A stretch of 61,744 nucleotides of DNA, counting the filler, from Corallochytrium limacisporum Hawaii (Eukaryota; Protista; Pluriformea), in the NCBI GenBank assembly GCA_002811645.1. It is 4 parts of 4 records of this genome, joined end to end, with 100 filler letters (N's around TTAATTAATTAA, not from the genome) between each part and the next. Parts side by side here need not be neighbours in the genome. Positions count along the whole stretch, not along the records: positions 1 to 31,928 come from PDIP01000114.1; 3 more parts are not named here. One strand, given 5' to 3'. Below, piece by piece: positions 4,002 to 29,552 of this stretch. The position numbers were made by a program, and so were the translations under genes. The notes under the pieces were generated by a model. That model was not told the DNA's origin. It searched no databases and saw only the letters and a program-made list of their open reading frames with translations. Positions within the stretch are counted from its first letter, which is position 1. Every line of letters begins with the position of its first letter.

Positions 4002-4772
4002 TTACTCGTCCTTCTTGCCAACGTTCTTGGTACCACGCAGACGACCGGTACGGCGGGCAGCAATGAGACCGACCTTCTTACCGGGGGGAGCGTCACGGCG
4101 GACAGTGGAGGGGAAACCAATGTGCTGATGGTTACCACCACCGTGGGGATGCTCGACGGGGTTCATGCACACACCGCGCACCTTGGGCCAGCTGTTGCGC
4201 TTAGCCTTGTACTTGTGGAAGGCACGACCGGCCTTCAGGATGGGCTTATCAGTACGGCCACCACCGGCAACCAGACCAACCATGGCGCGGGCAGCGGAGG
4301 GGATGACCTTCTTGGAGCCGGAAGGCAGCTTCACGCGGGTCTTTCCGTCCTCGGAGTGACCAATGATAATACCGTAGCAGCCAGAGGCACGAGCCAGGGA
4401 ACCACGGTCTCCGGTCTTCTCTTCCAGGTTGCAGATGACGGTGCCCTCGGGCATCTGTCCAACGGGGAGAATGTTGCCAACAACCAGAGCAGCCTTCTTA
4501 CCGGCGTAGATGAACTGACCAGTGTACATACCCTCAGTAGCGACAAAGAGCTCAGTGCTCTTCTTGAAACGGTAAGGATCCCGGAACTCAACCTTAGCCA
4601 GGGGAGCACCGCGACCGCTGTCGTGAATAATATCCTTGATCACACCCTTGATGAAACCGTTACGCTCGGCGTAGTCGAGAGTACGGAAAGCGGCGGCACC
4701 CTTGCGGTTTTTGGTGTGAGCCTTGAAAATAGCAGCCGAACCACGGCGCTGGCTACGAGTAACGCGACCCAT
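4002..4772 (-). CDS. RPL8: 60S ribosomal protein L8 (uL2)
   Basis: [11 protein letters not shown]...[12 protein letters not shown]...[25 protein letters not shown]. The true ATG is at 4772 and the ORF-track extension to 5081 is not homologous. No intron. Confidence 0.98.
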
Positions 4773-7436
4773 GTTTACTTTTTTAGATCTAAAAGACTTT
4801 GCTCGAAGATATACTAACCCGTTGGGCCCGAATAAATATCTTAAGGAACCCTTGAATACCACAACTGCCGTGATCGAGAAATGGTATATCACAAATAGCT
4901 CATCACAGATGAAGCTTCTGCCTGTTACATTATAATGATAACCTAGGTTTATAATATAATAATTGGCGAAGCCTGTGAAGCAATGGAAAGCATACATCGA
5001 GGTCATTTCACATTCCAGCTCACCCCCAGTACACTGGTGATGTATTGCGATGAAGCCGTTGTGACTGCCATTGTACACCAAAGGAGCTCACTCGCCCATA
5101 CTGCGTGGCCTGCGCTACCTGGTCTGTCAGTAACAAATGTACAGCAAGCGACAGCATCCCACTGATTCACTATGCAATCAAGAACGTCCTCTGAACTGGT
5201 ACATTATATATAAAACATGCATCCCGAGTAAATGTCTGGTAAATTGGTAATAAATGGCTCGGAGGCCCGTGCTCACTATACAAAAACTAGGCCTTCCACC
5301 ACCCCCCCTTTTCCATTTGTAGGCCCTAAAATTTCAAACAAAGAAAAAGGGGAGAAAAAACACACAAAATTTTGTGTGTGTCTTTCCCAATCTCCCCTCG
5401 AATGTGTGTGCTTTTTTAGGGACCCGGGGGGAGAGGTCCCCCCCGGGGGGGCCTCCTCCTTCCCTCTCAATTCTAAACTGTACCCCTAATATAAAACCAT
5501 TTAATGAAACCAGCGAGCTCCCCCTTCCTTTTCAGAGGGAGCAAAACAAAAAAGAAAAAAAAGAACGGAGAGAGAAGATTTAACAGAAAAGAAAAAAGGG
5601 AATCCCACCAACCGTGACCGCGGGGCTTGCCACTTCTCCGTTCCACCCACCCCACCGCCGCAGTTTTTTCTTTCCCACAAAGACAAACCCCCCCCCCCCG
5701 GGGGGGGGGGGAGGGGGGCCCGGGCCGGCCGCGCTTGCGCAAATGTGCAAGGCTGTTGTGTGTGACGCCCTGAAGCCATGCAGAAAGAAAATGATGCAGA
5801 AGAGGCTCGTAGTCTGCGAAAACACATTACTCAGTAATCAATGGAGTATGCATAGTAGTACGTAGGAGAATTATGCAAAACACCCCACGAACATGGCTAA
5901 TATCGCAACTGAGGAGCCTCTGACTCTCGGTTCCTCTCTCTTGCCTCACCACTGTCCTGTCCGCCATGGTACATCCGAGGGCCAGACGAAGCAAGCAACT
6001 GAAGACTACTAAACCATGCGGCTGTATGGTACACAAGGCCGCTGCTGCGGCTCCCCACACACACTCTCGCACAGCAATTACACAGAGGCACATGGAGATT
6101 CAAGACACCTCCGCTAAGAAAAGTAAGAATGATATGGAAGACTCCCGTGTCCGAAGACCATCGCACAGATAGGATTGGAAAGGAGTGAACACTAAAAATC
6201 AAAAGGATACGGGCAGTGCTGTGCCAATGGGAGCCTACCAGTGCGACCGCGGCTTCCCGACTCTCAGCCACCAAGTATTCTCAAAAAATTCTTCTCCGCT
6301 GTCGAAGAACTACGGAGCTATCAGTACGGGAGGGTATCAGCCGATGCTCCTGAAATATGGATCGCATATCAGCATGATGGTGGACCGCAATACACAGGAA
6401 GCCCCTGCGGCACAAAACTGCTAAAAACTCGGAGGAGTAAGGCACCCCATTGGTACCGGTTCGTAAGCTCCGAATCCCTCCGTTCCAAAATGACGCACAT
6501 TTCGAGCCTACTTGTTGTTGCAGGTCGCGGAGAAAAAGGGGTATGTTGATTGGAAACCCGACTGTGGAACTGGCTGGTGCCGATGCAACCGTTGGGAATG
6601 AGGGGGGTTGGAGAGGTTTATGTTAGACTTCTACATTCCCTGTCAGTGCAACAACGACTCCAAACCAAAAGCGGGAAGAGGGGGGCCAAAACGAATCCCG
6701 GGATGACCTGGACTCGGCTGATATGGGGACATGGGTGGGTTCGTAAGCGGCTCCGTTGACGATGATGGATGAAACAATGGATGCTCCGGCGTGTAAGCAT
6801 ACAGAAAAGCGCCCGAAGACGAGTGTGGCAGAGGCTGGCACGGCTTACACTCTCAAGCTTTCTAGCTTTTGTGAGGATCAATATCAGGGAGCGAATGAAG
6901 GATCATCAGCAAGCAAGGTCGGTGATCTTGGTCTTGGAATTCATCCCGAAAAAGGAGATCGCTAAGGCCGTCTTAGGGGCATCCTGGAAGAGGGTTTAGT
7001 GGTTAACTTGAGTATCTTCTCATTACAAGCAAGCATCGTACTTTGAGTGCCTATCTTACCCGCAATGGGTACAGAGGGAGAGATGGCTGCGTACATGCCA
7101 GACCACAACGCTTACGTTGCCTTGTCAGATGTAGGTCTTCATCAACGGATTACCATCATCCGGAACCCAAATCGAGCAAGTGTGGCTCAGAAGGGCCAAA
7201 TCACTGGAGGCTGGGGCCGAGAAGAAGCGCTAGTAGGAGCGGAATCCAGGGACGGTTAGTTTTCTGATAGGACCCGCCAGTGTTCGAACGCAAGCTAAAC
7301 CACCCACCCCCTCCCCCGGGGGGGGGGTGTCAAGGTTTACATTTCAAGTACTAGGAGATTTGTCTGCTTGTATTATCATTCTGAGTTGAAACATTACAAA
7401 ACTCGTTTGGCAGATCACCTTTCGACAGCTACGAGC

Positions 7437-10058: not shown

Positions 10059-11093
10059 TTAGTGAGATGTAAGTTGCGGCTGCGCCGTCTGCGGCTCCTT
10101 TGCCGGCTCCGCCTCTTGCTCCTTCGGTGGCTGCGTCTCTTGCTTCTTTTCGGGTCCCTTCTCGTGGTTCATTTCTTGCTTCTTCCCGTGCAGCTTCTCT
10201 TGTTGCTTCTCCAGCTTCTTGTCCAGCTTCTCTTGCTTCTTCTGCTGCTTCTTCTCTAGTTTCTCCTGCTTCTTCTCCAACTTCTCCTGTTTCTTCTCCT
10301 CTTTTCGCTCCAGCATCAATTCTTTGTCAGGTTTCCTCTTCCGTGCCTCCTCCACCTTACCAAGGTGTGCCTTGGCGAATTCCCACAGCTCATCATCCGT
10401 GGGGTAGCGTCCACCATAGTCCTTCTTTACGGCCTCTAGGAATTTTGGGAAATGTTCTACGTGGTGAATCCATTTTGTTTGCAGGAATTTTGCGATCTGC
10501 TTGGGGATGTTGCCACCCGGGTCCGCCTGTCCGAAACGCCAGATCTCGCAGCTGCCGTCGTCCTTCCGTTTGGCTGCCCAGCCACCGCGGTGGGTGACGG
10601 TACGGACAGTCTCCTCCCAACCCTCGGGATAACCGCACTCCCCCGCCAGATCATTGGGAGCCGACTTGTATACCATGAGGTAGAAGTCATCGTCGACCTT
10701 CACAGTGGTACCAACCGTCACTTGGTCACGGTGGGCGAGGAAGGGCGGGGTCTTGATAAACATGTGGGACAAACCCATGGGGCGGGGATCGAGGTCGAGG
10801 CAGGCAAACTTGTGGAATTGGGCAATGTCCTTCTCGAGAATTGCCTGGTGGTCTTCACCCGCGCCCCAGATGGCATTGATAGCCTCATGAGGAGTGATGT
10901 CCTTGAAGACTTTCCTCGCCTTGCGGAAAGGAATTTCTTCAACATCGGGCATCAGCTTGTCCTGGACCTCGACACCAGTCACGGTCGTGTACTTTTCGGG
11001 AAAGTCTTCAAAGAGCAATTCCTTGACCTCTTCGACCAAGGCATCAAGCTCCGCGCGCAGCTCGAGCACCCTTGCGTCTGTCCATGGCACCAT
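10059..11093 (-). CDS. START (lipid-binding) domain protein with K/Q/E-rich coiled-coil tail
   Basis: PPFLAHRDQVTV, MVYKS, GGWAAK and QADPGGNIPKQI are START-like motifs. C-terminal KKQEKLE repeats. Confidence 0.8.
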   Translation of the reverse strand: MVPWTDARVLELRAELDALVEEVKELLFEDFPEKYTTVTGVEVQDKLMPDVEEIPFRKARKVFKDITPHEAINAIWGAGEDHQAILEKDIAQFHKFACLDLDPRPMGLSHMFIKTPPFLAHRDQVTVGTTVKVDDDFYLMVYKSAPNDLAGECGYPEGWEETVRTVTHRGGWAAKRKDDGSCEIWRFGQADPGGNIPKQIAKFLQTKWIHHVEHFPKFLEAVKKDYGGRYPTDDELWEFAKAHLGKVEEARKRKPDKELMLERKEEKKQEKLEKKQEKLEKKQQKKQEKLDKKLEKQQEKLHGKKQEMNHEKGPEKKQETQPPKEQEAEPAKEPQTAQPQLTSH

Positions 11094-13963: not shown

Positions 13964-14611
13964 AACTGTCTGTTCTTAGTTACGGTCTCTAAGATCCCCA
14001 CTATCCCGGCATTGTTTCGGGACAAATGATTTTAACAATTAGTTCTATTTCTCAGCCATAAATCATTTACATGGTTGCAACCTATTTACAATATTTCCGG
14101 AAGCTTAAACTATTTCTCCACTGTGACCCCGGGTTTCACGAGTCTTGAGACCTACGGGACAATTCCTTGGGAACTCTGGCCATGCATCTGCGATTGTCAA
14201 CTCTTAGCGTCCAAATACCTCTGTATTGTTCAGGATGGGAATATAACCAAGAGCAGCCTCACAAACGGGAACACTGAAAGCTCTCCTGTGAACGTTCCAT
14301 CCAATTCCTGCTTTGTCCTTGTTCTTAGTAATTTTCAAAAGTGGGTTGCTCAGTCCCGTTGAGCACTGTCACCTTAAGTCGACGCGAGTCTGCACTTCAT
14401 GCTCACTTGTGTGCGTGCACTGTGGAACACACTCCTTAACGGTCGGTACACATCCGCCTTGAACCACCGCCCGCCCCCTCCCCTCACTCCCTGATTCGGG
14501 TCTGACACCACGGACCTCCGTTGCATAAAGAAACAATGGGAAAATGAGGGCCCCAACGAAACAAAGAACGACGCGTTACCACCACCACTCCCCCACCCGA
14601 GAGAGCAGGCA

Positions 14612-14614
14612 GTG

Positions 14615-14645
<31 letters not shown>
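14612..14645. repeat. Compound (GT)n(AG)n microsatellite
   Basis: Direct inspection. Confidence 0.9.
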
Positions 14646-17600
14646 CAGCGTGACAGCAAAAAAAAAGGAAGAAGAAAAAGAAAAAAAAAAGGAAAAATAG
14701 AGGGTCGTCCACAAGGAGCAACTCTCTAGGTACAAAACGTACGCAACAACTTTCCGCAGGCGTGTTTCTTTTTTTTTTCAAAATGCCCAAGGCGGGGCGG
14801 ACCAAAGTGAGAATAACCTTCCTGGAGTTTTCCCCAAAAAAAAATTATGTGAGAATAATCATCGAGCCCCCCCCCCTCCACCCCCGGGGAGCTCTCTCGC
14901 TCTCGCTTTCTTTCTTTCCATATTAGCGCGTTCCTACGTTGGTGATGGTCAGCAAGCCTGTTGGAACGACAAAAAAAAAGAAAAAGAAACGTCCTTGGTC
15001 TCTTCGTTTCTTTCTTGTGGCTCATTCATTCTCTCTCTCTCTCTCTCTGAATTCCAGTGGCCTTTGTCGCTGTATACTTCCGCCTTTTTCTCCTTTTTTT
15101 TTTGGTTTCTTGCGCTTCCTGGACTCCACTACCATTCACATCAACCCACCGTACCAACCGAGGCGCACCACCAATGCCAACCATCAGAAAGAGTTCTTTG
15201 CGTGTACTTTTACTATTCATTCTTTTGTATTTTTTTGGGTGTCCTTTTTGTGGATCTTATTCTTCTCCTTTCTCTCTTTTTTTTTCTGAAGGAGGGGAGG
15301 GTGTTCTTGGGGCAGTGAAGGAAGATCGTCCCAATTTTTATTCCCCCAAACTCCCGCCCCCCCCCCCCCTTCCCGTCTCACGGGCTCCCTTCCTTCCCCC
15401 CCGCAGCGGAGAGGGAGAAGCAAGGAAGGAAGGAAAGGGGGGGGGGAGGGACCGTGCTTTCCCCTTCCCAGCAGGACCCGACCGCAGTCTCAAAGATCCC
15501 CAACCAACCAACTCCTCTCCAGGGGGGGCGCCCCCTGGTTCGTGAAGACAGATCAGTACTGAAACACCTGGTGAGACCAGGAGGAAACGGAAGGACGCAA
15601 GAATTCGAACGAGGGGGGAGGGGCCAGCCGAACCAATCAGGATGCGTCGTCACCAGCGCGGCGTCGACACTCTACAGAGGTTGCGGGCAGAATCGAAAGT
15701 ATCGCCCAGTTCTTCCAGTACATAATGTAGTCAAATCAAGAATGCTGAATCTGAGTTATCTATCGGTCCCAGCCGGGATACAGGAACGCGATCTTGGGCT
15801 CGAGAGGGATCGTCGGTTTCGGGCACGTGTTGTTTACAGGTCCTGTATCTCGCTAGAAATCTAGTCCCATTCCTAATTATCCACTGTTTCTGCCGTCACT
15901 GTGTAATACGATGTCGTCGGAGAATATTGCCCTTCCAGCTATTTCTCGACACATCGGGTTGTTCAACTCACGTTCTCCCTAAATTTCATTATCTTTGTCC
16001 ATTCTCCCTAAAAACTAAAACGCAATACTTATTGTGCCCCAAAATGTCTTTGGTTATACTTTGTTTCGCTTCTCCACAAAATGTTTACCTGTTTTTCTCT
16101 TTTCTGTTCTGACTCATTTGGTTGCTGGCCGTATGGGGACAGACCTGCCCGCCCGTCTAATCGTCCTCCATCCGAACCGCAGAAAGTTTTCTACGTAAAA
16201 CAGACCCACCAAATGGAGAACAGTGGACATCAATATTACACCAAAGACGCAAAAGGGAGGACAGGAGGGGAGGGAGGGGTGGTGTAACCGAAAGGGAAGC
16301 TTACACCAACAACAAAAAACCTACCTTCCTTCGGGGCGAGACCGGGGAGCCCGGGAAGAAGAGAGACGGGGGAGGGGGGGGGGGGGTAAAGACACAAATC
16401 AAAAAAAAAAAAACCACTGAAAAAAGGTAAGGTGCTCTGTGGTGTTGTGCAACAGTGGGCGGTGGGCCAACTCTCGGGACCAAGCCAAGCCAGAACTTGG
16501 TTGTTAGAAAAGCAAAAGCAAAGACAAGCAAAGCGAAAAAAGAAAAGAAAGAAAGAAAAGAACATGGACAAGTGCTGCAGCCCCAAACCTCCTTTCCCAA
16601 TCGTCAAATAGCAGTCCTCCCCCCTCCTCCTCCCCGGGGGTTCTGCGGTGGCACTTCCGGTGCGGCGACGCCCACACCAGCCCTTCTTCGTTTCCCTTCC
16701 GTTCTCTCCGGGCCAACACGGAACAATGAACAAAAGAAATGAAAAACGGCAAAAATCTAAATTGAAAAAAAAGGGGAGAGAATGGACAGGCGGACAAGAG
16801 AGATAAAACGGGGAGAGAATAATGAGAAACAAAATACCATCTTTTTTTCATGGGCCCAAAATACCTTTGCCCGATACTCATAAGCAGCGGAAGTCGAGGC
16901 GGTTCGCAGTGGGCCGGCGGGACTCGCAAGGGAAGAAGAAGGGGTCCCCCACCCCGGCCCCCCCCCGGGGGGGAGGGGGGTTAAGTAGGGTAAATGGTCC
17001 GACCCGCCCACCTACCCCCGGGGGGGGGGGGGAGAGAGGAAGGAATCAAATCTCCGAAGGAAGTAAGCAGTGGCTGAGTCTACCTTTCGGGACAAGACAA
17101 AGGAAACAATATATATATACTACACAAGGGAGACGAAAAGAAGTAAAAAGTAAAAAAGGGAGGAAGAAGGGAGAATTGTTGTGTTGTCGTCCGTGGTAAA
17201 GTTTCTCCATCGTCGGGCGTAGCTGTATGTGCCTTTCGGTAGCGAAATACCGAAAAGGCCAAATGGCCGTTCTCGTACCCAAGGCAAGAATAGCCGGGGG
17301 CCGCCCGGGAGTTTTCTCAAACGCAAGCCCACCTCCAGAGATCTTACGGTCACGTACTGCCCGCTAAACTAGCAGGTAATACATAGATATGTGGATTACC
17401 ATTTTCTATTCTTAGTATATTCATTATACAAAGACCATGGAATAGACTGCATCGGACCTATCAATGAACCTGTTTGCCCCCGTTTGGGTAAATTAGGCGC
17501 CCAATCTTGCGCAAGTCTAGGACCTGATATGATACCCAGGCTACTTGGGAAAATCAAGAAAGTTTAGAGCATCGGTGCGTGTGGCACACGAGACCCCCCT

Positions 17601-18445
17601 CAGCAACCACAGGTCTCTATATTTCATGTACTGAAAAAAGTTATGGAGAGGAACGAGCACACCGCCCTCGCGTGACCTGGGAGGTGTAACGCCTCGCATC
17701 GCATGCCCCTGCCTACTTTCCCATCCGTTCCCATACGTTCACTATTGAACCAGGGTTAAGTCCGCTGTTTCATTTAACGTTTCCTTCTTTATTCTTACTT
17801 GATTTCTCTCCTCTTTCCATGGTGACCAGATGCACCGCAGACCCTTGAACTATGAAAACATTCATGGCTAACTTTATAGAAATTCTCCCTGGCAGTGTGC
17901 GGAAGAAAATCTACGGATCACATGATGAAATCGTCCACTGTTCAAGCAGCGATGTGCGCGGCGGCATCGCTCGCTCGGTCCTCACAAACAAAACAAGGCA
18001 AAAACTGGCGCCAGTCTTCTTGGTTGAGTTTTGCTAATAAATGTATCAGAACCCGTGCCCAGTTGGAAAAGAAGAAAAGGGCCCAAGAACACAAAGCAGG
18101 GCCATAAAAGGAGCTGTGAGTTTCTTCTTTGGCCAGGCGTCCCCCTTCCTCGCCCGCTGTTTTCTTTTTCGCTGCCACCTCGCGTGCCTTTCCCCTAATT
18201 TCTCACACACATATACTATAAATAACGACTTCTCCTTTCCCCGTTTCCTCCGCTTGGGGGGGGGGGTTGGGAGGCGCCGAGGGAACAGATATTGCGTTCT
18301 TATGAGAAAGGGGGGGGGAGGGGAATACAATTTTCTTGCTGAGATCTTTCGACCTCCCCCTCCTTTTCCGATGTGTGGAAATCGTATTTTGCGTTCCAGG
18401 GTATATCCTCCGCTATGGTTCCCCACGGCCAGAGATGATGTTGTG

Positions 18446-18852
18446 ACCCCATTCTACGGGTTATTATGGTCGTGTGTGGTGCTTCAGCTAATGGCAGTTC
18501 AACATCATCATCAGCATGTTTGATGAAGATGTCTAGATCGAGGAATCAATAGTCAGGGGCACAAGTCAAACTTTAAGCGATGATCAACCACTGTCTTATT
18601 CCGCGCACCCTCATTTAGATGAGGTCCGTGAAACTAGCGCCTGGTTTTTTTGCCACGCATTTGCAACGACACAGGGCTGCGGTCAACCAAATTAATCATC
18701 ACTTTGACAGCGTTTGGAGATGCAAGATACACCGGCGAAGCAGGGGTATTGCTCCCACCCGTACAGCATACAGGTGCAAGACCTGCGGAAATGGGGACCT
18801 GCACAAAAAGAGTCGCACTTCTGAACAGTCATGTCTGGGGGTTTGGTGCTGA
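18446..18852 (+). mobile_element. Possible degraded piggyBac-type transposase C-terminus (relic)
   Basis: RCKIH..RTAYRCKTCG..L..SCLGVW resembles the piggyBac C-terminal cysteine-rich domain. PFYGLL lies upstream in another frame. No intact ORF or terminal inverted repeats were found. Confidence 0.22.
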
Positions 18853-21616
18853 GAAAGTAAGGGGGTCAGGACCGGATAGCGTAATAACTTGAGTTTCATG
18901 TCGCAGCCACGCACGAGGACACCAGATAATGTGGGTGCAAAGCAACCAACAACAGCCAGCACTCCCTCGCTGAAAAGACAAAAACGTCGGGACGCTTCAG
19001 ATGTCGCACATGTTTCGCGTATGCTGCACACACAGCTCTCTGCGCAATTGGCAAATGCCACACGCTCCCATCGCAGGAATGCGCACAGACAGCGGCAACG
19101 AATGCGAAAAATTCGGCAAAGCAAGCCGGGAGAACAAAACTGTCACCTTCAATATGGGGTCAATCAGTGGTGTCCGACTATGCTCCCTATCGTCAGGATA
19201 AGTACTAATTCGGTACCAAAGCAGGGAATCCATCAGGGAACGTGGAGAAGAAAGAGGAGAGGGGGGGGGGGCACAGGCCGTGGAGAGGGCGAGGTGGGGG
19301 TTTGTTTCCGAGCTGGAAAGTTGACAGAAGGCTGAGTCCGTTGTGCCGTGGTCAATACATTGACAAACCAAGGCGAAAAGGGACCGGAAACTAATCAATA
19401 ACAACGCCCACTCAGTCTCCTTTCTGGTTGTCAGAAGTCCGTCTGGGATTGCATGCGACGTTTCGAGGGGAAAACAGCCCCCAGTTCCCTGAGGAAACAT
19501 CGGGAGTCAATTTCCAAATCTCATCAATATAAGGGTCTACGTAGATTTTATTCCGGGCTGTAAAATAAGAACCGAATGTACTGGTGTGTCGTAGGGGCCT
19601 AATTTTAAGTTTCGATACAGATCCCAAAATCCAAGAGGGGGAGGCGAGGTTGTTTTAGTTTTACCTTCGTGGCAATCCAAGCCCTCGGTATGGGGGAATG
19701 GGAGGAGAGTCACGGGAGTACGTGGTTGGTAGTCGTTCTATGGAAAGAAGGGTATGTTTCAGCGCTGTTCCTTTTCAATGTAGCTGCATATGCGAAAATT
19801 ATGGGTCAAAATTTCCATAGAAAATGTATTGATGGTGATGCCACAACTACGATATTCTTCATATCTAATCTTTCCTGTGAAAATCCTTGGCCTCGGGTCG
19901 GTCGTTCAGTATAGATTAGTTACCAAATGGGAAACCCTCGCCCAGGACGCGTTCATGCCTCACATCTACTGGGGTTCGGAATGAGACGCATTCTGATCAA
20001 CCACACTGTACTAGCCTGCCACTACACCAATGACATGGGATTGATCACCATGGACATTACTTTAGCGACCATCATCACCATATGCGGTGACAGAGCAACA
20101 TGAAGAAAACTTTACTTCCTTTTCCATGGCCCGTCCCTGTCGGGCAAAGTACAGAGGAAGCGTGACATCATGGGATATTCCATACGCTGTGCTTCTTACA
20201 TCTGCAGAGAAGTATAGCTTGATATAACATGAACACTCAAATTAGGACGAAGGTTTTCTTCCAACCCAGCCGTACAGAGCTTTGGATGTTCACAGCATGT
20301 CTCGCACAGCGACGACACGTCACCTATGCGAACTGGGGCGAACTAAGTGTTTTGCCCTGCTACCGTGTCCCACCACCCCACGCGAAAAAGCGTACATAAT
20401 ACCCTTTGATACATATGTATTTCCTCGAACCACGGTGGTTGGGTACTTGAAGAAGTTGAAAATGGACAAGGGAGTGCTCAATACCGGCACACATTGATGG
20501 ATAACGACCACATCGTGATGGCGATGTGAGGTCAAACTCGGACGGGGAAGGCTCTTGGAGCTAGGAAGAGAACGAAACGGTGGGATGGTGCGGCGCTGCC
20601 GACCATCATGAGACACAAGGTTCGCTTGAGCACCCGCCCTCTGCCCACCTCTCGGGCTGGGCATTTTACTATTGGGAAAGTTACATTTGCGGCTGGCTGC
20701 CAAGGGGGGGGAAATAGGAGGCTGAGGAAAGTCCGGAATGGGGTAAAGTGATATTTTTTTTTTTTTTTGGCGGGTGGAAGGTTGTTAATTGTTCTCCGAT
20801 TGTTTTCATCTGGCCTGTTCCTTGTACGGAGCCTGTGACAGTCCAGTTAGTGTCGGATGATGTGTCAGCTCGGTGTCCGCACGCTGCTGCATCAGCTCGG
20901 GGCAGAGAGTTTGAAGCATATGTAGGCAGGATACGCGATTAGCATCGCACTCCAAGCCATTTTAAGTTCTTATCTCGTCTGTGTGCAGCGACGAACGCTG
21001 AAAGGGGGGGGGCCGCGGGACGGTTGCTGACTCGTGATTTGTATGACCTCACGGCGAGAGAGCTGCACACAGCCCATTGCGTAGAGATTCACTCAATGCA
21101 GTGGAAACAGTTGTGGGTAGAATGGGAGGAACGAGAGAAGCGGCAGGCAGAGATCTAACATCCTGCGGCAAAAGGTCGGCGGAAACAACAGTGGCTGGCT
21201 ACAGGGAATTGAATCCGCCACAAAACAGAGTGGCCTACCATTTCGGCAGGTCGCCCTGTAAAATCCCGTGGCTTTTCGTATTAATCAATTGGGTCTTGGT
21301 TGGATGCTCAGGAGCGCCACAGCTGCCCCACCCTTTTTTGTTTCTTTTGGGTTGCGCCCCGGGGGGACGAGCGAGCGCCCTTCCGCCACCCCTCAGTGGG
21401 TTTGACACCATTGGCACGATCCGCTTTGCTCTCCTGCACTTTTTCTAGATCTGCATGGAAGAATTTACTGTCAGCATCCCCACTTTCATCACCGTCAGTC
21501 CATCCAATCTGATCGCGAGATGGTATTTAAGAGACTCCCATAGGCTCCGTCTACCTGGACACCATCCACCTAAGAAGGACCAGTGTGATATCTTGAAGTA
21601 TATGCTGTGGTACGCC

Positions 21617-22315: not shown

Positions 22316-22942
22316 GCCAGGTTTATCAATTATCCATAGTTTTGCATGCCATCCTCGCCATCATTTAATAAAAATTACATACTGAAACGATCTACATTGA
22401 TATTGAAACGTCATGGTCCAGAATACATACAGGTTTTGTAGAATGGGAGTCTCGTCGGCGTTCCTTGTCATCTGTCCACCCCTGAAACCCCGCACGGCTA
22501 CGAGTCCCTCGGAGGGAAGCGCGAATCCGTTTGTGCGGGTTGACAGTGCTGATTGGGAGTCTATTTTCGCGTACCTCTTTGACGACCCCCGGGTCTGAGC
22601 CGGGTGTAGCTCAGGATCGTCGACGGTGCACGACCGCGCGAAAGATGTGAAGAGGGGGAGGGGAGGAGGGGGGGGGGTTCTCGAAAATTTCTCGACTTCA
22701 GAAGCTGTCGGGTACGGATGGAAAGCAGGGTGGCGGAGACCCCGGTACGGAAAACAGTTGCCGCACAGGGTACGTGAAGACGACTAGTATACTTTCTGAT
22801 TACTTTACTATGCTTGCCATTGCATGATTGACATATGTCCCTCAATGTAAGCGGGATATGGACTATGTGATGCCTGTCTAAGGTCACAGACACGATGTGA
22901 TCACAGTAGTTTTCCTCCTTGTGGGTCAATGATCGCATAGCC

Positions 22943-25900
22943 ATGGACAACCCGAACGTGATCTATCAAACACGTATCGTGGTGGACTGTTTCAAACAGA
23001 ACCGCAAACCTAAAGGGATACCTGAACCCATCTATGTCCTCAGCCACTTCCATGCAGACCACTACGGTGGCGTCACTAATAATTGGAATCGTGGTCTGAT
23101 CTGGTGCTCGACGCTGACGGGGTCACTATTAGTCAACGTTCTGGGGGTCGAAGAACAGTATGTCAGGCAATGCGAACTCGGCACCCCTGTGGAACTGCCG
23201 GACAGCACAGAGGCAACCTTCCTTGATGCGAACCATTGTCCGGGAGCAGCCATGATCTTGTTCCGCGTGAGAAACGAGAATTCATCGTCTTTCACATGTC
23301 ATCTTCACTGTGGTGATTTCCGTTACCATCCATTCATGAAAAATTTGGCCCAGCTCGCGGCGCTGGCACCGGAGAGTCCACAATTCAGTGGAACAAGGCT
23401 TGATCGGCTCTACCTCGACACAACGTACTGCAATCCCCGATTCGATCTGCCGGACCAAGTGCATCCAATCGAATTCGTCGCACGGACAGCGGATGAGGAG
23501 ATCCGCAGTGGCAAGGAGAAGGGAGAGCGTACCCTTGTACTTATTGCCACGTACGTCATTGGTAAGGAGAAGATTCTTCTACGTGTTCATGAGCAGACCG
23601 GGCACCAGCTACACGTCAGTGACAAGAAAATGAAAATTTTACAGCTGCTGGGTTATGCCTCGGACGAAGACCAACCCAACAGCGGTCAAAACAGCCCTCC
23701 TTTCACTCAGAGCCTCGATGGTGTGCCTATTCACGTCGTTTCCTGGGGTTTTCTGGGAGAGATGGCCCCAGGCGGATGGACCTTTCTTCCAAATTGGTCC
23801 GTATTTCGGGAAATGCTCGAGCACTATCAGGGACACTTTGAACGCATAGTCGCCTTTGTTCCGACCGGCTGGACGTACACCATGAAGTCGTCGAAAAGAG
23901 ATGAAAACGGAGTCGTTTACAATCGCATGACAAGCGAGGATTTGAATGCTGTTGTATACACTGTGCCCTACTCAGAACATTCGTCATTCGGGGAACTGCG
24001 TGAGTTCGTTGGTTTCCTGAAGCCGACACGTGTCGTGCCGACGGTGTTTGGTCGGAGTGTAAAGCCTGAGAAGTTGAAGCGCTATTTCCGTGACCTCGTG
24101 AACATCAAATCAGCTCATGCTAATCTGTTCGCAGGTGCAAGAGATGAGAAGTCAGAACCTCTGACATGTGTGGAAAATGGGAAAGAGGATTCAGACACAG
24201 CCAATGTCGATGCGCAGCGGCAGTCGAAGCGGCCGCGTGTAGAGAATGGTGACGAATCTGACCCCCAAGAAAATCGCAATGACGAAAACTACGATGGTGA
24301 TAATATGACAGCAGTCATGGATATCGTGGAAGAGAGATGTGCAGGGGACAACAAGGAGAACGCGCAGCTGCCAACCGCAACAAGTACAAACACGATATCT
24401 ACCACTGAGGCGGAAGCGGGGACCGCTGAATGTCCTGTATGCCAGCAGGACATGCCCTTGGCCAGCATCAACGAACACATTGATGAGTGTTTGACGCGGC
24501 AGGCGATCACACTGGACAAAGTCCAAGGCAAAAATGAACCTGCTGATGTATCTGATCAGGAGCAGGACTCACCAATATTGCGAGGTTCTACCATCGAGGA
24601 ATTGCGCGCCTTGGTGCCGGACATTAAGGAAAGCTACGCTCAGTCACTTCTACTGCGTGCGAACGGCAATCTCGAGCTAGCCATGAATTACTATTTTAAC
24701 GATGAGAGCGGCATTACCATTGATTTAGCCCCGCGTACCCAGCCACTGTCTCAGGCATCAGAACCTCAAGCACCCCGAACCAACGGCACCACCCCACGGT
24801 CTTTGAAGAAAGTTGCCGCCACGAGCGGGTCAAACACAGCCAATACGAATAGAGGGAGTGGAAGTTCAGAATCCCACACTCTTGACTCGCTCTTTGGCAG
24901 CGCTACGAAATGTAACAGCGGTAGCATGGAAGAGAAAAGCAGCGTCTCACAGTCCTCTCAGGCGAACACCACTCCCACAAAATCGATGGGTAACACCAGC
25001 AACGATCAGAATGCTTTGAACATCGACTATTCCCCCGGTGAGCCCGTTCCATACGCCACTGTTGCACATGCCTTTGAGATTCTTGAGAAGGAACAGGGTC
25101 GCAGAAGGATCACGCAGACTTTGACATCTCTTTTCGCAGAAATTATGGACAAGACACCCGAAGATCTACTGCCATGTGTCTATCTTTGCTCGAATCGCAT
25201 TGCTCCAGCTTACACGGGCCTGGAGATCGGTATCGGTGGCTCTTTAGTCAGCCAATGCGTGCGGGAGGTTACGAACCGGAGTCGGAATGCGATGCGAGCG
25301 GACTACGCCGAGCTGGGCGACCTTGGTGATGTGGCATACCGTGCACGGTCACAAATGAAGGTGCTTTTCCCGACCAAGCCGCTCACGGTACGGGAGCTTT
25401 ATAAGAATTTGCTCCGCATGGCCCGCATGAAAGGCTCTGGGGTGCAGAATGACAAGAAGAATATTGTCAAGAAAATGCTTGTTGCCTGTCGCGGTGTAGA
25501 GACCAAGTTCCTGGTGCGGACCTTGATTCAGCACATTCGCACTGGAGCGACGGCGACCACAGCACTGCACGCTCTGTCAGGAGCATTTCTGCAGCGTCAG
25601 GCGAGGCAGACTGGGAGCGTTGTACCCGCGGAGCGCTTAGCAGAAGGGACAGCACTTCTCAAGGACGCCTTTAGTCAGTGTCCGAGTTTCGACAAGCTTG
25701 TGCCCGCTCTAATGGAATGCAGTGAGATTGACGACATTCGTGAAACGTGCCGCATGCGGGCGGGCATTCCGATCAAGCCGATGCTTGGTACCATCATCAA
25801 GGATCTCGCTGGCGTCTTGAAACGAGTCGGGCACACCACACCGATTGCTTGTGACTGGAAGTTCGACGGAATGCGCGCGCAGATACACTTGCTGGAGAAT

Positions 25901-27235
25901 GGCAATGTCCGGGTCTTCAGTCGTCACCTTGAGGAGGCTACAGAACGATTCCCCGACGTGTGTCTGGCGACACAGAATGCAGCACGGAGTCACGGTGTTT
26001 CGTCGTGCATTTTGGACGCGGAGATTGTAGCCGTCGAATTGCCGAAGGATTACGACGACAGCAAGAGCGGGAGTGGTGGTGTGCCACAGCAACAGGAAAA
26101 GGTGGCAGGCAAATGGCCGTTCAAGATTCTTCCTTTCCAACAGCTGTCTAGCCGCCCGCGGAAAAATGTCGCCATAGAAAACATCAAAATCAAGGTCTGT
26201 GTCTTTGCCTTTGACCTGATGCTGCTCAATGGTGAGAGTCTGCTGCAGCGAACCTTTCGGGAGCGGCGAGATGCTATGTACGCTCATTTTGACGTAACCC
26301 CGGGTGTGTTTGACTTTGTCAAACAGCGTGTGATCAACCCGAAGGCCATGACTATGGCCGGGGAGGAGCCCGCCGAAGCGTTGCAAGCGTGTATGGTTGA
26401 CGCCTTTGCGGAAAATTGTGAGGGTGTCATGGTTAAACCGCTTGATTTTCCGACAGTGGACGGCCGTGTCAGCAACGCTGACGACCCTGACTTCAAACAG
26501 ACATGTGCATCGACCTACCAACCTGCTAAACGCTGCGGCAATTGGATGAAAGTCAAACGGGATTACCTTGAAGGTATGGCTGACTCCCTCGACCTCGTTC
26601 CGATTGGTGGATGGTGGGGTAATGGCCGCAAGGCCGGTTGGATCAGTCCGTATTTGCTCGCAACCTACGACGCGGACACAGATACGTACTACACCGTATG
26701 CAAGTGCATCTCTGGGTTCAGTGATGCTTTCTACAAGGAGTCATTGAAGTTTTACATGGGTGATAAGGACAGCGACAAGAATGACGAGAACGTTGCCGAT
26801 GGTTACAGTGATGGTGTTGACGATAACAGGAACCGTCTGCTGGGTCGCAGGCCCGAGAATGTCGTCGTGACCGATGCGCTGACGCCATCCTTCTGGTTCG
26901 ATCCGTGCGAGGTCTGGGAGCTGCGTGGTGCTGAGTTCACTGTCAGTTCTAACCACACGGCGCTGCGGGGATCGATTGTCGAAGGCGACGAGACGAAAGG
27001 TCTGAGCCTGCGCTTTCCGAGATTTATTCGTAAGCGCCAGGACAAGAAAATCAATGATGCAACCAGCCCGAGCGAGCTGCTGGCCATGTACCGTTTGCAG
27101 GAGCAGAGGGCGCAAGGGCTGAATACGAGTAGCAGCACCGCTGCTGCCCCATCGCAACAGCAACCTGAAGATGACGTAGACGACGAGGAGGTCCGCGGGC
27201 ACCAGAACCAGGTCGATGATGAGGTTGAGTTCTAG
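22943..27235 (+). CDS. LIG6-like ATP-dependent DNA ligase fused to SNM1/Pso2-type metallo-beta-lactamase/beta-CASP nuclease, with UBZ4 and UBA-like domains
   Basis: Nuclease motifs LSHFHADHYGG, ANHCPGA, HCGDFR, LYLDTTY and VPYSEHSSF. UBZ4 motif CPVC..INEHIDECL. Ligase motifs KPML, KFDGMRAQIH, ILDAEIV, FAFDL, EGVMVK, WMKVKRDY and SLRFPRF. Confidence 0.92.
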   Translation: MDNPNVIYQTRIVVDCFKQNRKPKGIPEPIYVLSHFHADHYGGVTNNWNRGLIWCSTLTGSLLVNVLGVEEQYVRQCELGTPVELPDSTEATFLDANHCPGAAMILFRVRNENSSSFTCHLHCGDFRYHPFMKNLAQLAALAPESPQFSGTRLDRLYLDTTYCNPRFDLPDQVHPIEFVARTADEEIRSGKEKGERTLVLIATYVIGKEKILLRVHEQTGHQLHVSDKKMKILQLLGYASDEDQPNSGQNSPPFTQSLDGVPIHVVSWGFLGEMAPGGWTFLPNWSVFREMLEHYQGHFERIVAFVPTGWTYTMKSSKRDENGVVYNRMTSEDLNAVVYTVPYSEHSSFGELREFVGFLKPTRVVPTVFGRSVKPEKLKRYFRDLVNIKSAHANLFAGARDEKSEPLTCVENGKEDSDTANVDAQRQSKRPRVENGDESDPQENRNDENYDGDNMTAVMDIVEERCAGDNKENAQLPTATSTNTISTTEAEAGTAECPVCQQDMPLASINEHIDECLTRQAITLDKVQGKNEPADVSDQEQDSPILRGSTIEELRALVPDIKESYAQSLLLRANGNLELAMNYYFNDESGITIDLAPRTQPLSQASEPQAPRTNGTTPRSLKKVAATSGSNTANTNRGSGSSESHTLDSLFGSATKCNSGSMEEKSSVSQSSQANTTPTKSMGNTSNDQNALNIDYSPGEPVPYATVAHAFEILEKEQGRRRITQTLTSLFAEIMDKTPEDLLPCVYLCSNRIAPAYTGLEIGIGGSLVSQCVREVTNRSRNAMRADYAELGDLGDVAYRARSQMKVLFPTKPLTVRELYKNLLRMARMKGSGVQNDKKNIVKKMLVACRGVETKFLVRTLIQHIRTGATATTALHALSGAFLQRQARQTGSVVPAERLAEGTALLKDAFSQCPSFDKLVPALMECSEIDDIRETCRMRAGIPIKPMLGTIIKDLAGVLKRVGHTTPIACDWKFDGMRAQIHLLENGNVRVFSRHLEEATERFPDVCLATQNAARSHGVSSCILDAEIVAVELPKDYDDSKSGSGGVPQQQEKVAGKWPFKILPFQQLSSRPRKNVAIENIKIKVCVFAFDLMLLNGESLLQRTFRERRDAMYAHFDVTPGVFDFVKQRVINPKAMTMAGEEPAEALQACMVDAFAENCEGVMVKPLDFPTVDGRVSNADDPDFKQTCASTYQPAKRCGNWMKVKRDYLEGMADSLDLVPIGGWWGNGRKAGWISPYLLATYDADTDTYYTVCKCISGFSDAFYKESLKFYMGDKDSDKNDENVADGYSDGVDDNRNRLLGRRPENVVVTDALTPSFWFDPCEVWELRGAEFTVSSNHTALRGSIVEGDETKGLSLRFPRFIRKRQDKKINDATSPSELLAMYRLQEQRAQGLNTSSSTAAAPSQQQPEDDVDDEEVRGHQNQVDDEVEF

Positions 27236-27314
27236 CTACGATACAAATTCTTGTTCTTTGGTGATTACATCTACGAAATTCTTGCTTACGAAACTAAATT
27301 ATCCGACTTAGTGC

Positions 27315-29552
27315 TTATTCTTCAATGGTTTGTCTGAACAGACCACCTACATCCACCTCATAGCTCTGAAGATACATCATGTTGTTGTGCTCCACGGTAG
27401 CTAAGTCATATTTGTAGTTGACCATCATGCCAAAGGATTCCCGCAGCCCTCGCTCCGATGTGTTTGCCGCCCAATTCAGGCGGTACATTTGCGCGCCATT
27501 GCGAACATGGAAGTTTCCAACAGGGTCAAAGATGGCACCACCACGCTTCTGGAGGGCGAGGTACCGGCCGCATAGGCGCATCATTGGCTCACGTAGCGTC
27601 TGACTCGTGACGACGTCCTTCTTCGGGAACTCGAGTAGGGCACTGGCAATAGCCGGTAGCTCGGACTGCGCACTGACCGCAGCTCCCGCAGAGCCTTGTT
27701 CGCTACCGAGGGCGTCCGCAACAGTGCGCAACGCCTCCTGCAAAGACGGCTCCGGGTCCACTCGCTTTCTTGCGACCTGGTCCAGCCAAGACGAGAAGGC
27801 AGGGATCGGGGACAGCGTGCAGAAATTGACCATAGAACTGAACTCCTGTCGCAGTTCAAAGACTACGCGCTTGATCAAGAAGTTACCCAGGTCGACACCA
27901 CTAAGTCCACGTTGGGTACTGGAGATAGAGTAGAAAATCGCCGTGGTGATGTCTTCCACAGGCGGATCCTGGTGTTGGATCGGTTCCTCAATGATCTTCT
28001 GCACATTGTCTGCAATGGTCGGTAGTAGAGCAATATACGTGACCACCAGCGGTTCGGTGGGCATGGAATTGTGAAGAAAGGCGTAACACCGCCGGCCCGG
28101 AGCGAGGCGCTGCTTCAGGCCCATCATGTCATCTACCGCGTGCACAGCTTCGTAGTTCTTGAGCTTTTCCACTAGGTACGCAGGAGATGCCCAGGTTATA
28201 CGCTGTAGGTCCATCACACCGACACTGAACCAATCGGCGAGCAGATCACGCAGTGAGTTGTTGAGAAATTTTATATCACTGACCTCCTTGTCCGTCAATA
28301 GTTCTGAGTCTGTCTCGGTGTCTCCACCTGTGGCCCGAAGGGTTGGGTTCCTGCGTGTCTGAGCCAAGAATTCGAGCAGATCCTTGCGCATGTCGACCAA
28401 GAACTTCACTCCCCCGACTTGCTGACTGATGGCTGTAAATACAACTTCGTAGAGCGGAATGCACGCCGCCCGGAGTTTGTTGGCTGTCCGCGTAAAGGCG
28501 ACATGATCTCCGCTGTCGCCCAGGCTGTGCAGCTCGGCCGCAGTCTGCAGAATGTCCGCTTCATTTAGTCCACATACGCGCACCAAGGACACAAAGAAAT
28601 GCCCACGATCTTCTGGCTTAAGGCGAAGGTAGGCATTGCGAATAGCTGCCGTGACATCGGCGGGCAAGGAATCACGGCCGTGCAGACTTGTGGCCATGTA
28701 CGCACTGCTGAGCAGTTCCTGCAGATCCTTCGGTGCTATCGAGCCTATCGAACTGCGTCGCGAGAGGCCCACAGTGGATGCCAGCGACCCCACACGCTCT
28801 GCGGAGGGACCGCTACCATCCGTGCTACCCACTTTTTGGACGTTACTGTCCGTGGCACTGGCAGCAATGCCGGAACTATCCTCCGCAACCGGACTGAGCA
28901 CCTGCTCCGCAGTCAGTATTTGTGATTGCTGGGGCGCTGCAGTGCTCGACGTGTCAGGCCCCGCCGCTCCGTACTGCTGAAACTGTTTCTCCTGACGGTA
29001 CTGCTGGTCCAATTCGCGGGCAAGAGACTGCTCCCGCTCTTGCTGTAGCCGTTCATCTGAGCGCGTGCCGCCCACTCTGACCGAGGAGGAGCGGGGGTTA
29101 GGGCCCCATGACACCTGGCGCTGTACCACCGGTCTGATCACTCCTCCACTAGTCGAGTCATCTTCTTCATCCGAGCTGCTCTCTTTGCCGTCCTTGTCGC
29201 CACCTTTGGAACCGTAGTGACGGTGCCACAGTCGCACAGACGATGAGCGGTGCAGGGGTCCGGGAACGGAATTGCCTACATTTCTGGTGCCGCTGCTGAA
29301 GCTCCGACTGTGTGACTTGTGCACCTGGGTGACTTGAGGTCTCTTTGACTGTACGGTAGCCTCAGGCGGAGTAGATATCCTGCCATTGCCAACATTGTTG
29401 CTTGCAGAACCCTGCCGTTGTTCTGACATGGTACTCAGTATGTGTCTGCCGATCAAAGACCTCCTTCCTGCACTAGTCGCAATTCCGCGGACTGTGGAAA
29501 GACTGCACACGGATCTCTTGGCACCTGTCTGAAACAGCAATGTCAGTGTCAT
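27315..29552 (-). CDS. MLYCD: Malonyl-CoA decarboxylase
   Basis: GGVKFLVDMR, LQRITWASP, YEAVH, AIFYSISSTQRGLSGVDLGNFLIKRV, TLSPIP, DPVGNFHVRNGA and GMMVNY. Start uncertain (ATGs at 29633, 29552, 29429). Confidence 0.93.
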   Translation of the reverse strand: MTLTLLFQTGAKRSVCSLSTVRGIATSAGRRSLIGRHILSTMSEQRQGSASNNVGNGRISTPPEATVQSKRPQVTQVHKSHSRSFSSGTRNVGNSVPGPLHRSSSVRLWHRHYGSKGGDKDGKESSSDEEDDSTSGGVIRPVVQRQVSWGPNPRSSSVRVGGTRSDERLQQEREQSLARELDQQYRQEKQFQQYGAAGPDTSSTAAPQQSQILTAEQVLSPVAEDSSGIAASATDSNVQKVGSTDGSGPSAERVGSLASTVGLSRRSSIGSIAPKDLQELLSSAYMATSLHGRDSLPADVTAAIRNAYLRLKPEDRGHFFVSLVRVCGLNEADILQTAAELHSLGDSGDHVAFTRTANKLRAACIPLYEVVFTAISQQVGGVKFLVDMRKDLLEFLAQTRRNPTLRATGGDTETDSELLTDKEVSDIKFLNNSLRDLLADWFSVGVMDLQRITWASPAYLVEKLKNYEAVHAVDDMMGLKQRLAPGRRCYAFLHNSMPTEPLVVTYIALLPTIADNVQKIIEEPIQHQDPPVEDITTAIFYSISSTQRGLSGVDLGNFLIKRVVFELRQEFSSMVNFCTLSPIPAFSSWLDQVARKRVDPEPSLQEALRTVADALGSEQGSAGAAVSAQSELPAIASALLEFPKKDVVTSQTLREPMMRLCGRYLALQKRGGAIFDPVGNFHVRNGAQMYRLNWAANTSERGLRESFGMMVNYKYDLATVEHNNMMYLQSYEVDVGGLFRQTIEE

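Follow-up and report, generated by a model that had tools for sequence, protein, structure and literature searches.

A probable LIG6-type nuclease-ligase with candidate ubiquitin-binding modules in the unicellular holozoan Corallochytrium limacisporum

How does an enzyme architecture that has been regarded as the property of plants come to be encoded in the genome of a unicellular relative of animals? The question is raised by a gene of Corallochytrium limacisporum, located at positions 22943..27235 (+) of the window, by which we mean the whole 61,744-nucleotide stretch of DNA analysed here, along which all coordinates count. The predicted product joins an SNM1/Pso2-type nuclease to a LIG1-type DNA ligase, an arrangement otherwise associated with the plant ligase LIG6, the biochemistry of which is so far poorly known. 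In papers up to 2019 LIG6 has been called 'unique to plants' (PMC2708163) and 'plant-specific' (PMC6728418), and its plant function concerns the ageing of seeds and a back-up route of end joining (PMC6554324). The original prediction, made from the sequence alone, was of a LIG6-like fusion in a non-plant, opisthokont host, and the host is indeed a holozoan protist. We put at roughly three in four the probability that this gene specifies a transcribed LIG6 orthologue, in which a nuclease, a UBZ4 finger, a UBA-like domain, a weak PCNA-box-like motif and a LIG1-type ligase are united in one chain. What identifies it as LIG6 is the presence of an intact nuclease first and of a LIG1-type ligase at the C-terminus, their union in one polypeptide, and the position of both halves within LIG6-type clades.

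Domains and motifs of the encoded protein

A single open frame extends over 22919..27235 (+) for 1438 codons, a stop-free run with a computed chance of ~1e-30, and its first ATG at 22943 defines an intron-free coding sequence (22943..27235, +) of 1430 amino acids with matches in both Pfam and the PDB. The expectation that one uninterrupted frame of 1430 codons would join nuclease, zinc finger, helices and ligase is borne out, the motifs by which these had been recognised (HFHADH, HCPG, GDFR, SEHS, KFDG, the UBZ4 finger and the UBA-like helices) all being found where they had been read, and a domain scan recovers the nuclease and the LIG1-type ligase in the order typical of LIG6. All features described below lie on the plus strand.

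The nuclease domain, of the SNM1/Pso2 metallo-beta-lactamase/beta-CASP type, occupies residues 1-400 (22943..24142) according to alignment with human SNM1A and to the Pfam DRMBL match (residues 288-369, E = 8e-20, above cut-off), while human SNM1A in the PDB matches residues 29-237 with E = 7e-48. Compared residue by residue with human SNM1A, the metal-binding and beta-CASP motifs are all kept, namely HFHADH (HxHxDH) at 23045-23062, DANHCPGA at 23225-23248 (HCPG at 23234), HCGDFR at 23306-23323 (GDFR at 23312), the beta-CASP motif A LYLDTTYC at 23408-23431 and motif B PYSEHSS at 23966-23986 (SEHS at 23972). A basic patch, SKRPRV (24224..24241), follows the domain and, as read from the sequence, is a candidate nuclear localisation signal.

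The C-terminal half aligns with human LIG1 through all three ligase domains, with motifs I, III, IIIa, IV, V and VI kept, and human LIG1 in the PDB matches residues 693-1266 with E = 1e-111. The DNA-binding domain (residues 703-879; 25049..25579) corresponds to DNA_ligase_A_N (E = 2e-40) and is followed by the adenylation domain at 25778..26587, delimited by alignment to LIG1 and matched by DNA_ligase_A_M from residue 946 (E = 4e-35), both Pfam matches being above cut-off. Within the adenylation domain motif I, KFDGMR, provides the active-site lysine K973 (KFDG at 25859, codon of K973 at 25859-25861), and motifs III, IIIa, IV and V are placed by the same alignment at 26009, 26204, 26420 and 26540, respectively. 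The OB-fold domain (26633..27046; DNA_ligase_A_C at residues 1231-1368, E = 8e-12, above cut-off) ends with motif VI, LRFPRFIRKRQDK, at 27008-27046. Three segments of acidic or low-complexity sequence have no counterpart in LIG1. Judged by sequence, both enzymes keep every catalytic motif and give no hint of decay.

The linker between the two enzymes had been predicted to carry two ubiquitin-binding modules, and both are recovered as candidates, although the evidence for them is of different kinds, the finger being backed by profile and model and the helices by model and Foldseek with sequence matches under cut-off. The zinc finger (residues 497-516; 24431..24490), C-x2-C-x12-H-x3-C, agrees with the CCHC spacing of UBZ4 fingers, C-x2-C-x(11-12)-H-x3-C, and carries the signature IN-x-H-I-D-x-C. 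The Pfam match to zf-WRNIP1_ubi on residues 496-513 (E = 1.4e-4) is under the curated cut-off; a family profile of the finger compared with the PDB matches the UBZ domains of WRNIP1 (1e-8) and RAD18 (1e-7), FAN1 (5e-4), and likewise the UBZ domains of RAP80 and Pol kappa. An AlphaFold model of residues 488-600 predicts the finger as a beta-hairpin followed by a helix (beta-beta-alpha) with a predicted local distance difference test score (pLDDT) of ~95, and the best Foldseek matches of this model are the complex of the WRNIP1 UBZ with ubiquitin (root mean square deviation 0.8 Å over 30 residues) and the RAD18 UBZ. The next ranks are taken by many UBA and CUE domains at ~1 Å, including those of Ede1, EDD, Mud1 and the UBA of hHR23A; the Foldseek E-values are poor, the domains being tiny. 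The second module is a UBA/CUE-like three-helix bundle (residues 547-588; 24581..24706), for which the Pfam matches CUE (549-586), UBA_4 and UBA_8 are all under curated cut-offs and the profile matches to UBA/CUE domains in the PDB are weak (E = 0.15-1.6). It is modelled as three helices with a pLDDT of ~90, and aligns to the region of plant LIG6 bearing a precomputed UBA_4 match. Further along, at residues 645-651 (24875..24895), a scan of the relatives points to a putative, degenerate motif similar to the PCNA-interacting peptide (PIP) box, HTLDSLF, which we take to resemble the non-canonical PIP box of Pol kappa; most relatives have a canonical QxxLxxFF box at this place, between the UBA-like domain and the ligase.

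Relatives of the two halves, fused and separate

With the full-length protein as query, fused proteins were recovered from Capsaspora (XP_004364857), to which the identity is 34% across 95% of the length, and from three choanoflagellates (Salpingoeca rosetta, S. infusionum and Choanoeca perplexa), together with hundreds of plant and green-algal LIG6 sequences, the identity to plant LIG6 being 32-40%. An exhaustive search of representatives with the ligase half added 22 further fused cluster representatives, among them Pigoraptor, a cluster holding a Prasinoderma protein, and the stramenopile Hondaea. The restriction of LIG6 to plants, which the original prediction had taken as the received view, therefore does not hold, fused members being found also in holozoans and in Hondaea; nor is the gene the isolated oddity that it had appeared to be, six non-plant fused proteins being public and the architecture thus in part already catalogued. 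Since the holozoan and Hondaea sequences were available in NCBI, UniProt or EukProt, the gain lies in their interpretation and not in the discovery of a new type of system. In the literature, with subscription journals mostly uncovered, we found no mention of LIG6 or of an SNM1-ligase fusion in any non-plant organism, holozoans included, nor of a connection with Adl1 of S. pombe.

The likeness to plant LIG6 (AtLIG6, AT1G66730; rice ligase VI) comprises the N-terminal SNM1-type nuclease, the UBA-like linker domain and the C-terminal LIG1-type ligase, as well as the sharing of LIG6-type clades by both halves. The window protein differs in possessing a UBZ4 finger, for which a scan of plant and green-algal members gave no match, in lacking a canonical PIP box and in the modest sequence identity, and the seed-ageing and end-joining role of the plant enzyme is not transferable to a holozoan protist. 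Closest in both trees are the other holozoan fused proteins of Capsaspora, S. rosetta (PTSG_11661), Pigoraptor, Choanoeca and S. infusionum, which share the architecture including the UBA-like domain and, with the exception of S. rosetta, in which the scan found none, also the UBZ4 finger, but in most of which the PIP box is canonical or nearly so; none of these database entries has been characterised. Separate forms of the two halves are also known. The nearest ligase-only proteins are fungal (Fimicolochytrium, Paraphysoderma, Zychaea and Dipodascopsis, with 42-46% identity to the window ligase half, and Quaeritorhiza), and the nearest nuclease-only proteins are those of chytrids, several of which are annotated as containing UBZ4; the finger itself is likewise kept in several chytrid proteins. 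In chytrids the two halves are separate, unlinked genes (P0242-P0262, P0362/P0367; L014:8001-9977), and in Spizellomyces no ligase adjoins the nuclease gene.

The genome searched, a 24.1-Mb assembly of 286 contigs in which the nuclease-ligase gene lies on contig 16, encodes in addition LIG1-like, LIG4-like and SNM1A-like proteins (the last on contig 171) and two shorter DRMBL proteins. The host LIG1 is identical (100%) to EukProt Clim_evm100s152, which identifies the host as C. limacisporum, its next-best matches being animal LIG1. Since LIG1, LIG4 and SNM1A-like genes are separately present, the fusion is an extra gene and not an altered LIG1 or SNM1A. Beside the LIG4-like gene (contig 46; locus positions 5136-6893) a 1.7-kb stretch is open in all six frames, which probably reflects masking or a string of N.

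Separate trees of the two halves place the window protein with LIG6-type clades and away from LIG1 and SNM1. In the ligase tree (49 rows, 626 columns, LG+C20 mixture model) a LIG6-type clade including the window has support of 98/90 and contains, on the one hand, a green, stramenopile and dinoflagellate group (99/99) and, on the other, an opisthokont group (99/95) made up of the window, Filasterea, choanoflagellates and the fungal ligase-only proteins, so that the affinity proposed for the ligase half, with fungal second LIG1-like ligases devoid of a nuclease, is recovered. These fungal enzymes form the sister group of the window ligase half but lack the nuclease, the chytrid nuclease-UBZ4 protein being the product of a separate gene; S. 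pombe Adl1 possibly belongs with them, Adl1 itself not being among the compared sequences. LIG1/Cdc9 shares the three-domain ligase with motifs I-VI, yet is a distinct paralogue, and the true LIG1 of the host sits with animal LIG1 (99/99) to the exclusion of the window. In the nuclease tree (43 rows, 370 columns) the holozoan fused and chytrid nuclease-only proteins form a group (95.7/99), plant LIG6 nucleases form a clade of their own and the SNM1A of the host falls in with plant SNM1. Human SNM1A (DCLRE1A) and yeast Pso2 have the nuclease fold and its catalytic motifs in common with the window protein, but SNM1A bears its UBZ N-terminal to the nuclease, lacks a ligase and is not the orthologue. 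Approximately unbiased (AU) tests, carried out in IQ-TREE under LG+F+G4, a simpler model than the mixture model of the ligase tree, reject the placement of the window ligase with LIG1 (p = 1e-5) and of the window nuclease with canonical SNM1 (p = 0.002); together with the respective trees they rule out an identity as LIG1 or as an SNM1A/Pso2 orthologue. The two half-trees agree and track organismal relationships, and the LIG6 family is old and not specific to plants, members being held by opisthokonts, the green lineage and stramenopiles.

How the family acquired this distribution is less certain. Our tentative preference, held with slightly less than even confidence, is for a fusion of nuclease, UBA-like domain and ligase that predates the divergence of opisthokonts, plants and stramenopiles, near the root of eukaryotes. 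On this view it persisted intact in the closest unicellular relatives of animals and had disappeared by the time animals arose, and fungi divided it between a nuclease-UBZ4 gene and an uncharacterised ligase gene of Adl1 type. One ancient fusion with later fissions is favoured because the domain order and the UBA-like linker are shared. Of the two histories originally offered, ancestral fusion or gene transfer, the former is thus kept as the favoured one, although the simple loss in fungi that accompanied it gives way to the retention of both halves as separate chytrid genes, and the possibility of repeated independent fusion had been overlooked. No LIG6-type member from animals was found among the top matches, on which alone this absence is judged.

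The strongest competitor, which we regard as plausible though less likely, is that the halves were separate in the eukaryotic ancestor and were joined independently in holozoans, in the green lineage and in stramenopiles. Separate halves do occur, ligase-only forms in Galdieria and Polykrikos and nuclease-only forms in red algae, and the unfused chytrid proteins each have a terminal PIP box, canonical in both cases, at the C-terminal end of the nuclease-UBZ4 protein and at the start of the ligase. Many protist nuclease-only proteins, moreover, already possess a C-terminal UBA, and a UBZ-UBA profile compared by hhalign with the Hondaea linker found no match. The comparison with the N-terminus of the Fimicolochytrium ligase likewise gave none, so that the UBA domain is traced into neither lineage. 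Against this, independent fusion requires three separate joinings of the same two paralogue subfamilies. The domain order is identical in all three groups, and the UBA-like domains of holozoans and plants can be aligned and occupy equivalent linker positions, in most cases ahead of a single PIP box.

Much less probable again is that an early holozoan received an already fused LIG6 horizontally from a green or other alga. The family is by far best represented in plants and algae, and the AU test keeps a single clade of fused proteins without the fungal ligases (p = 0.083), a topology compatible with such a transfer. In both trees, however, the holozoan sequences sit with the fungal half-genes and outside the green and stramenopile clades, the UBZ4 finger is common to holozoans and chytrid nuclease-only proteins and absent from the plant and green-algal members scanned, and the identity to plant LIG6 is low. 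Vertical descent fits better than a transfer from plant to protist because both halves have their closest relatives among other opisthokonts.

Continuity and transcription of the gene

Contigs were available from two runs dated 2015, each belonging to a different study and here named X1 and X2, their type 'RNA?' being a guess. In X1 one contig spans 22794 to beyond 27800 with 0 differences to the window and no joint, and in X2 a contig spans 22779-26649 with 21 differences and likewise crosses the nuclease/ligase junction without a joint. Because both runs cross the inter-domain junction, the halves are continuous in independent data, and the fear of a chimeric join between them is allayed. 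By its 21 differences (10 synonymous and 11 non-synonymous) X2 looks like a second strain. The upstream intergenic stretch 22355-22778 is uncovered in both runs and neighbouring genes differ ~10-fold in contig depth, and for these reasons the contigs resemble transcript assemblies. The gene is real and probably transcribed, and one mRNA for both halves is likely.

The contig starts at 22794 and 22779 delimit a putative 5' leader of the transcript (22779..22942, +). This probable leader contains nine ATGs, three of which are in frame yet meet a stop ahead of the main start, so that upstream open reading frames (ORFs) are possible. In X2 a 77-base hole at 26650-26727 follows the long contig, and the next contig leaves the window sequence at 26727 for ~2 kb unlike the window, which points either to chimerism of the contig or to divergence between strains within the ligase OB region.

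That the gene is an artefact, two neighbours joined by an error of assembly or reading, or a decaying copy, is scarcely credible, for apart from the departure of the X2 contig at 26727 everything speaks against it: the open frame of 4.3 kb, the X1 contig identical over the whole gene, the contig of a second study across the junction, the recurrence of the architecture in five other holozoans and the retention of all catalytic residues. An assembly chimera is ruled out by the contig continuity and the conserved architecture of the relatives.

Several points nevertheless weigh against the identification and the history that we prefer. The UBA-like domain is without any match reaching a curated Pfam cut-off, and a scan of the window protein for the canonical PIP box, Q-x-x-[LIMV]-x-x-[FY]-[FY], gave no match, HTLDSLF being the only similar motif. 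Plant LIG1 is not among the named rows of the ligase tree, nor is S. pombe Adl1 identified there, and the survival of the clade of fused proteins alone in the AU test (p = 0.083) means that the topology of vertical descent is favoured but not exclusive. The ratio of 10 synonymous to 11 non-synonymous differences between the strains indicates only moderate constraint, and the contigs of 'RNA?' runs prove continuity but neither a single transcript nor a level of expression.

Possible function and genomic surroundings

What, then, might such an enzyme do? Exonucleases of the SNM1 type depend on a 5' phosphate and leave one behind, the end that ligases require, and human SNM1A reaches ubiquitinated PCNA at forks stalled by cross-links by means of its UBZ finger and PIP box. 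By analogy, the holozoan protein could trim and seal under the guidance of ubiquitin and possibly of PCNA, a proposal to which we give even chances. The ubiquitin-binding modules, perhaps aided by PCNA binding, would bring the protein to ubiquitin-marked damage, for example at stalled forks, where the exonuclease would trim the damaged or cross-linked 5' strand and the tethered ligase would seal the nick after gap filling.

An orthologue with intact catalytic motifs in Corallochytrium, together with its fused kin in Capsaspora, choanoflagellates and a stramenopile and the split forms of fungi, recasts LIG6 as an ancient eukaryotic repair enzyme, and gives targeting by ubiquitin and PCNA the standing of a concrete, testable mode of recruitment. 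If the fusion is ancestral, LIG6 would be a fourth ancestral eukaryotic ligase, open to study in transfectable protists and in yeast; stable transfection of Corallochytrium has been reported (bioRxiv 10.1101/2020.11.12.379420). The relationship also connects LIG6 with the second LIG1-like ligase of fungi, itself unstudied, makes small, transfectable and intron-poor organisms usable for work on LIG6, and adds one gene loss on the animal line, as far as the top matches allow absence to be judged.

The neighbours of the nuclease-ligase gene are ordinary eukaryotic genes, encoding translin, GDPD, subtilase, GNAT, malonyl-CoA decarboxylase and a TFIIB-like protein. The malonyl-CoA decarboxylase gene is convergent, its stop lying 79 bases from that of the nuclease-ligase gene (27233-27317), and the 3' ends of the two genes probably overlap, because one contig crosses both stops. 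On an otherwise dense and intron-poor contig, ~7 kb of the window (14000-21000) are without an ORF of >200 amino acids; this stretch could hold intron-rich or non-coding genes, and a scan of the window, 14000-21000 included, with Rfam and a tRNA search gave no match. At 10158-10300 a CTT-rich tandem repeat with a period of 12, 21 or 33 sits within a minus-strand ORF of 344 amino acids that has no Pfam match. Finally, a 359-amino-acid ORF at 4002-5081 (-) bears a Ribosomal_L2_C domain; we take it to exceed the usual cytosolic uL2 in length, and it may presumably be the mitochondrial form.

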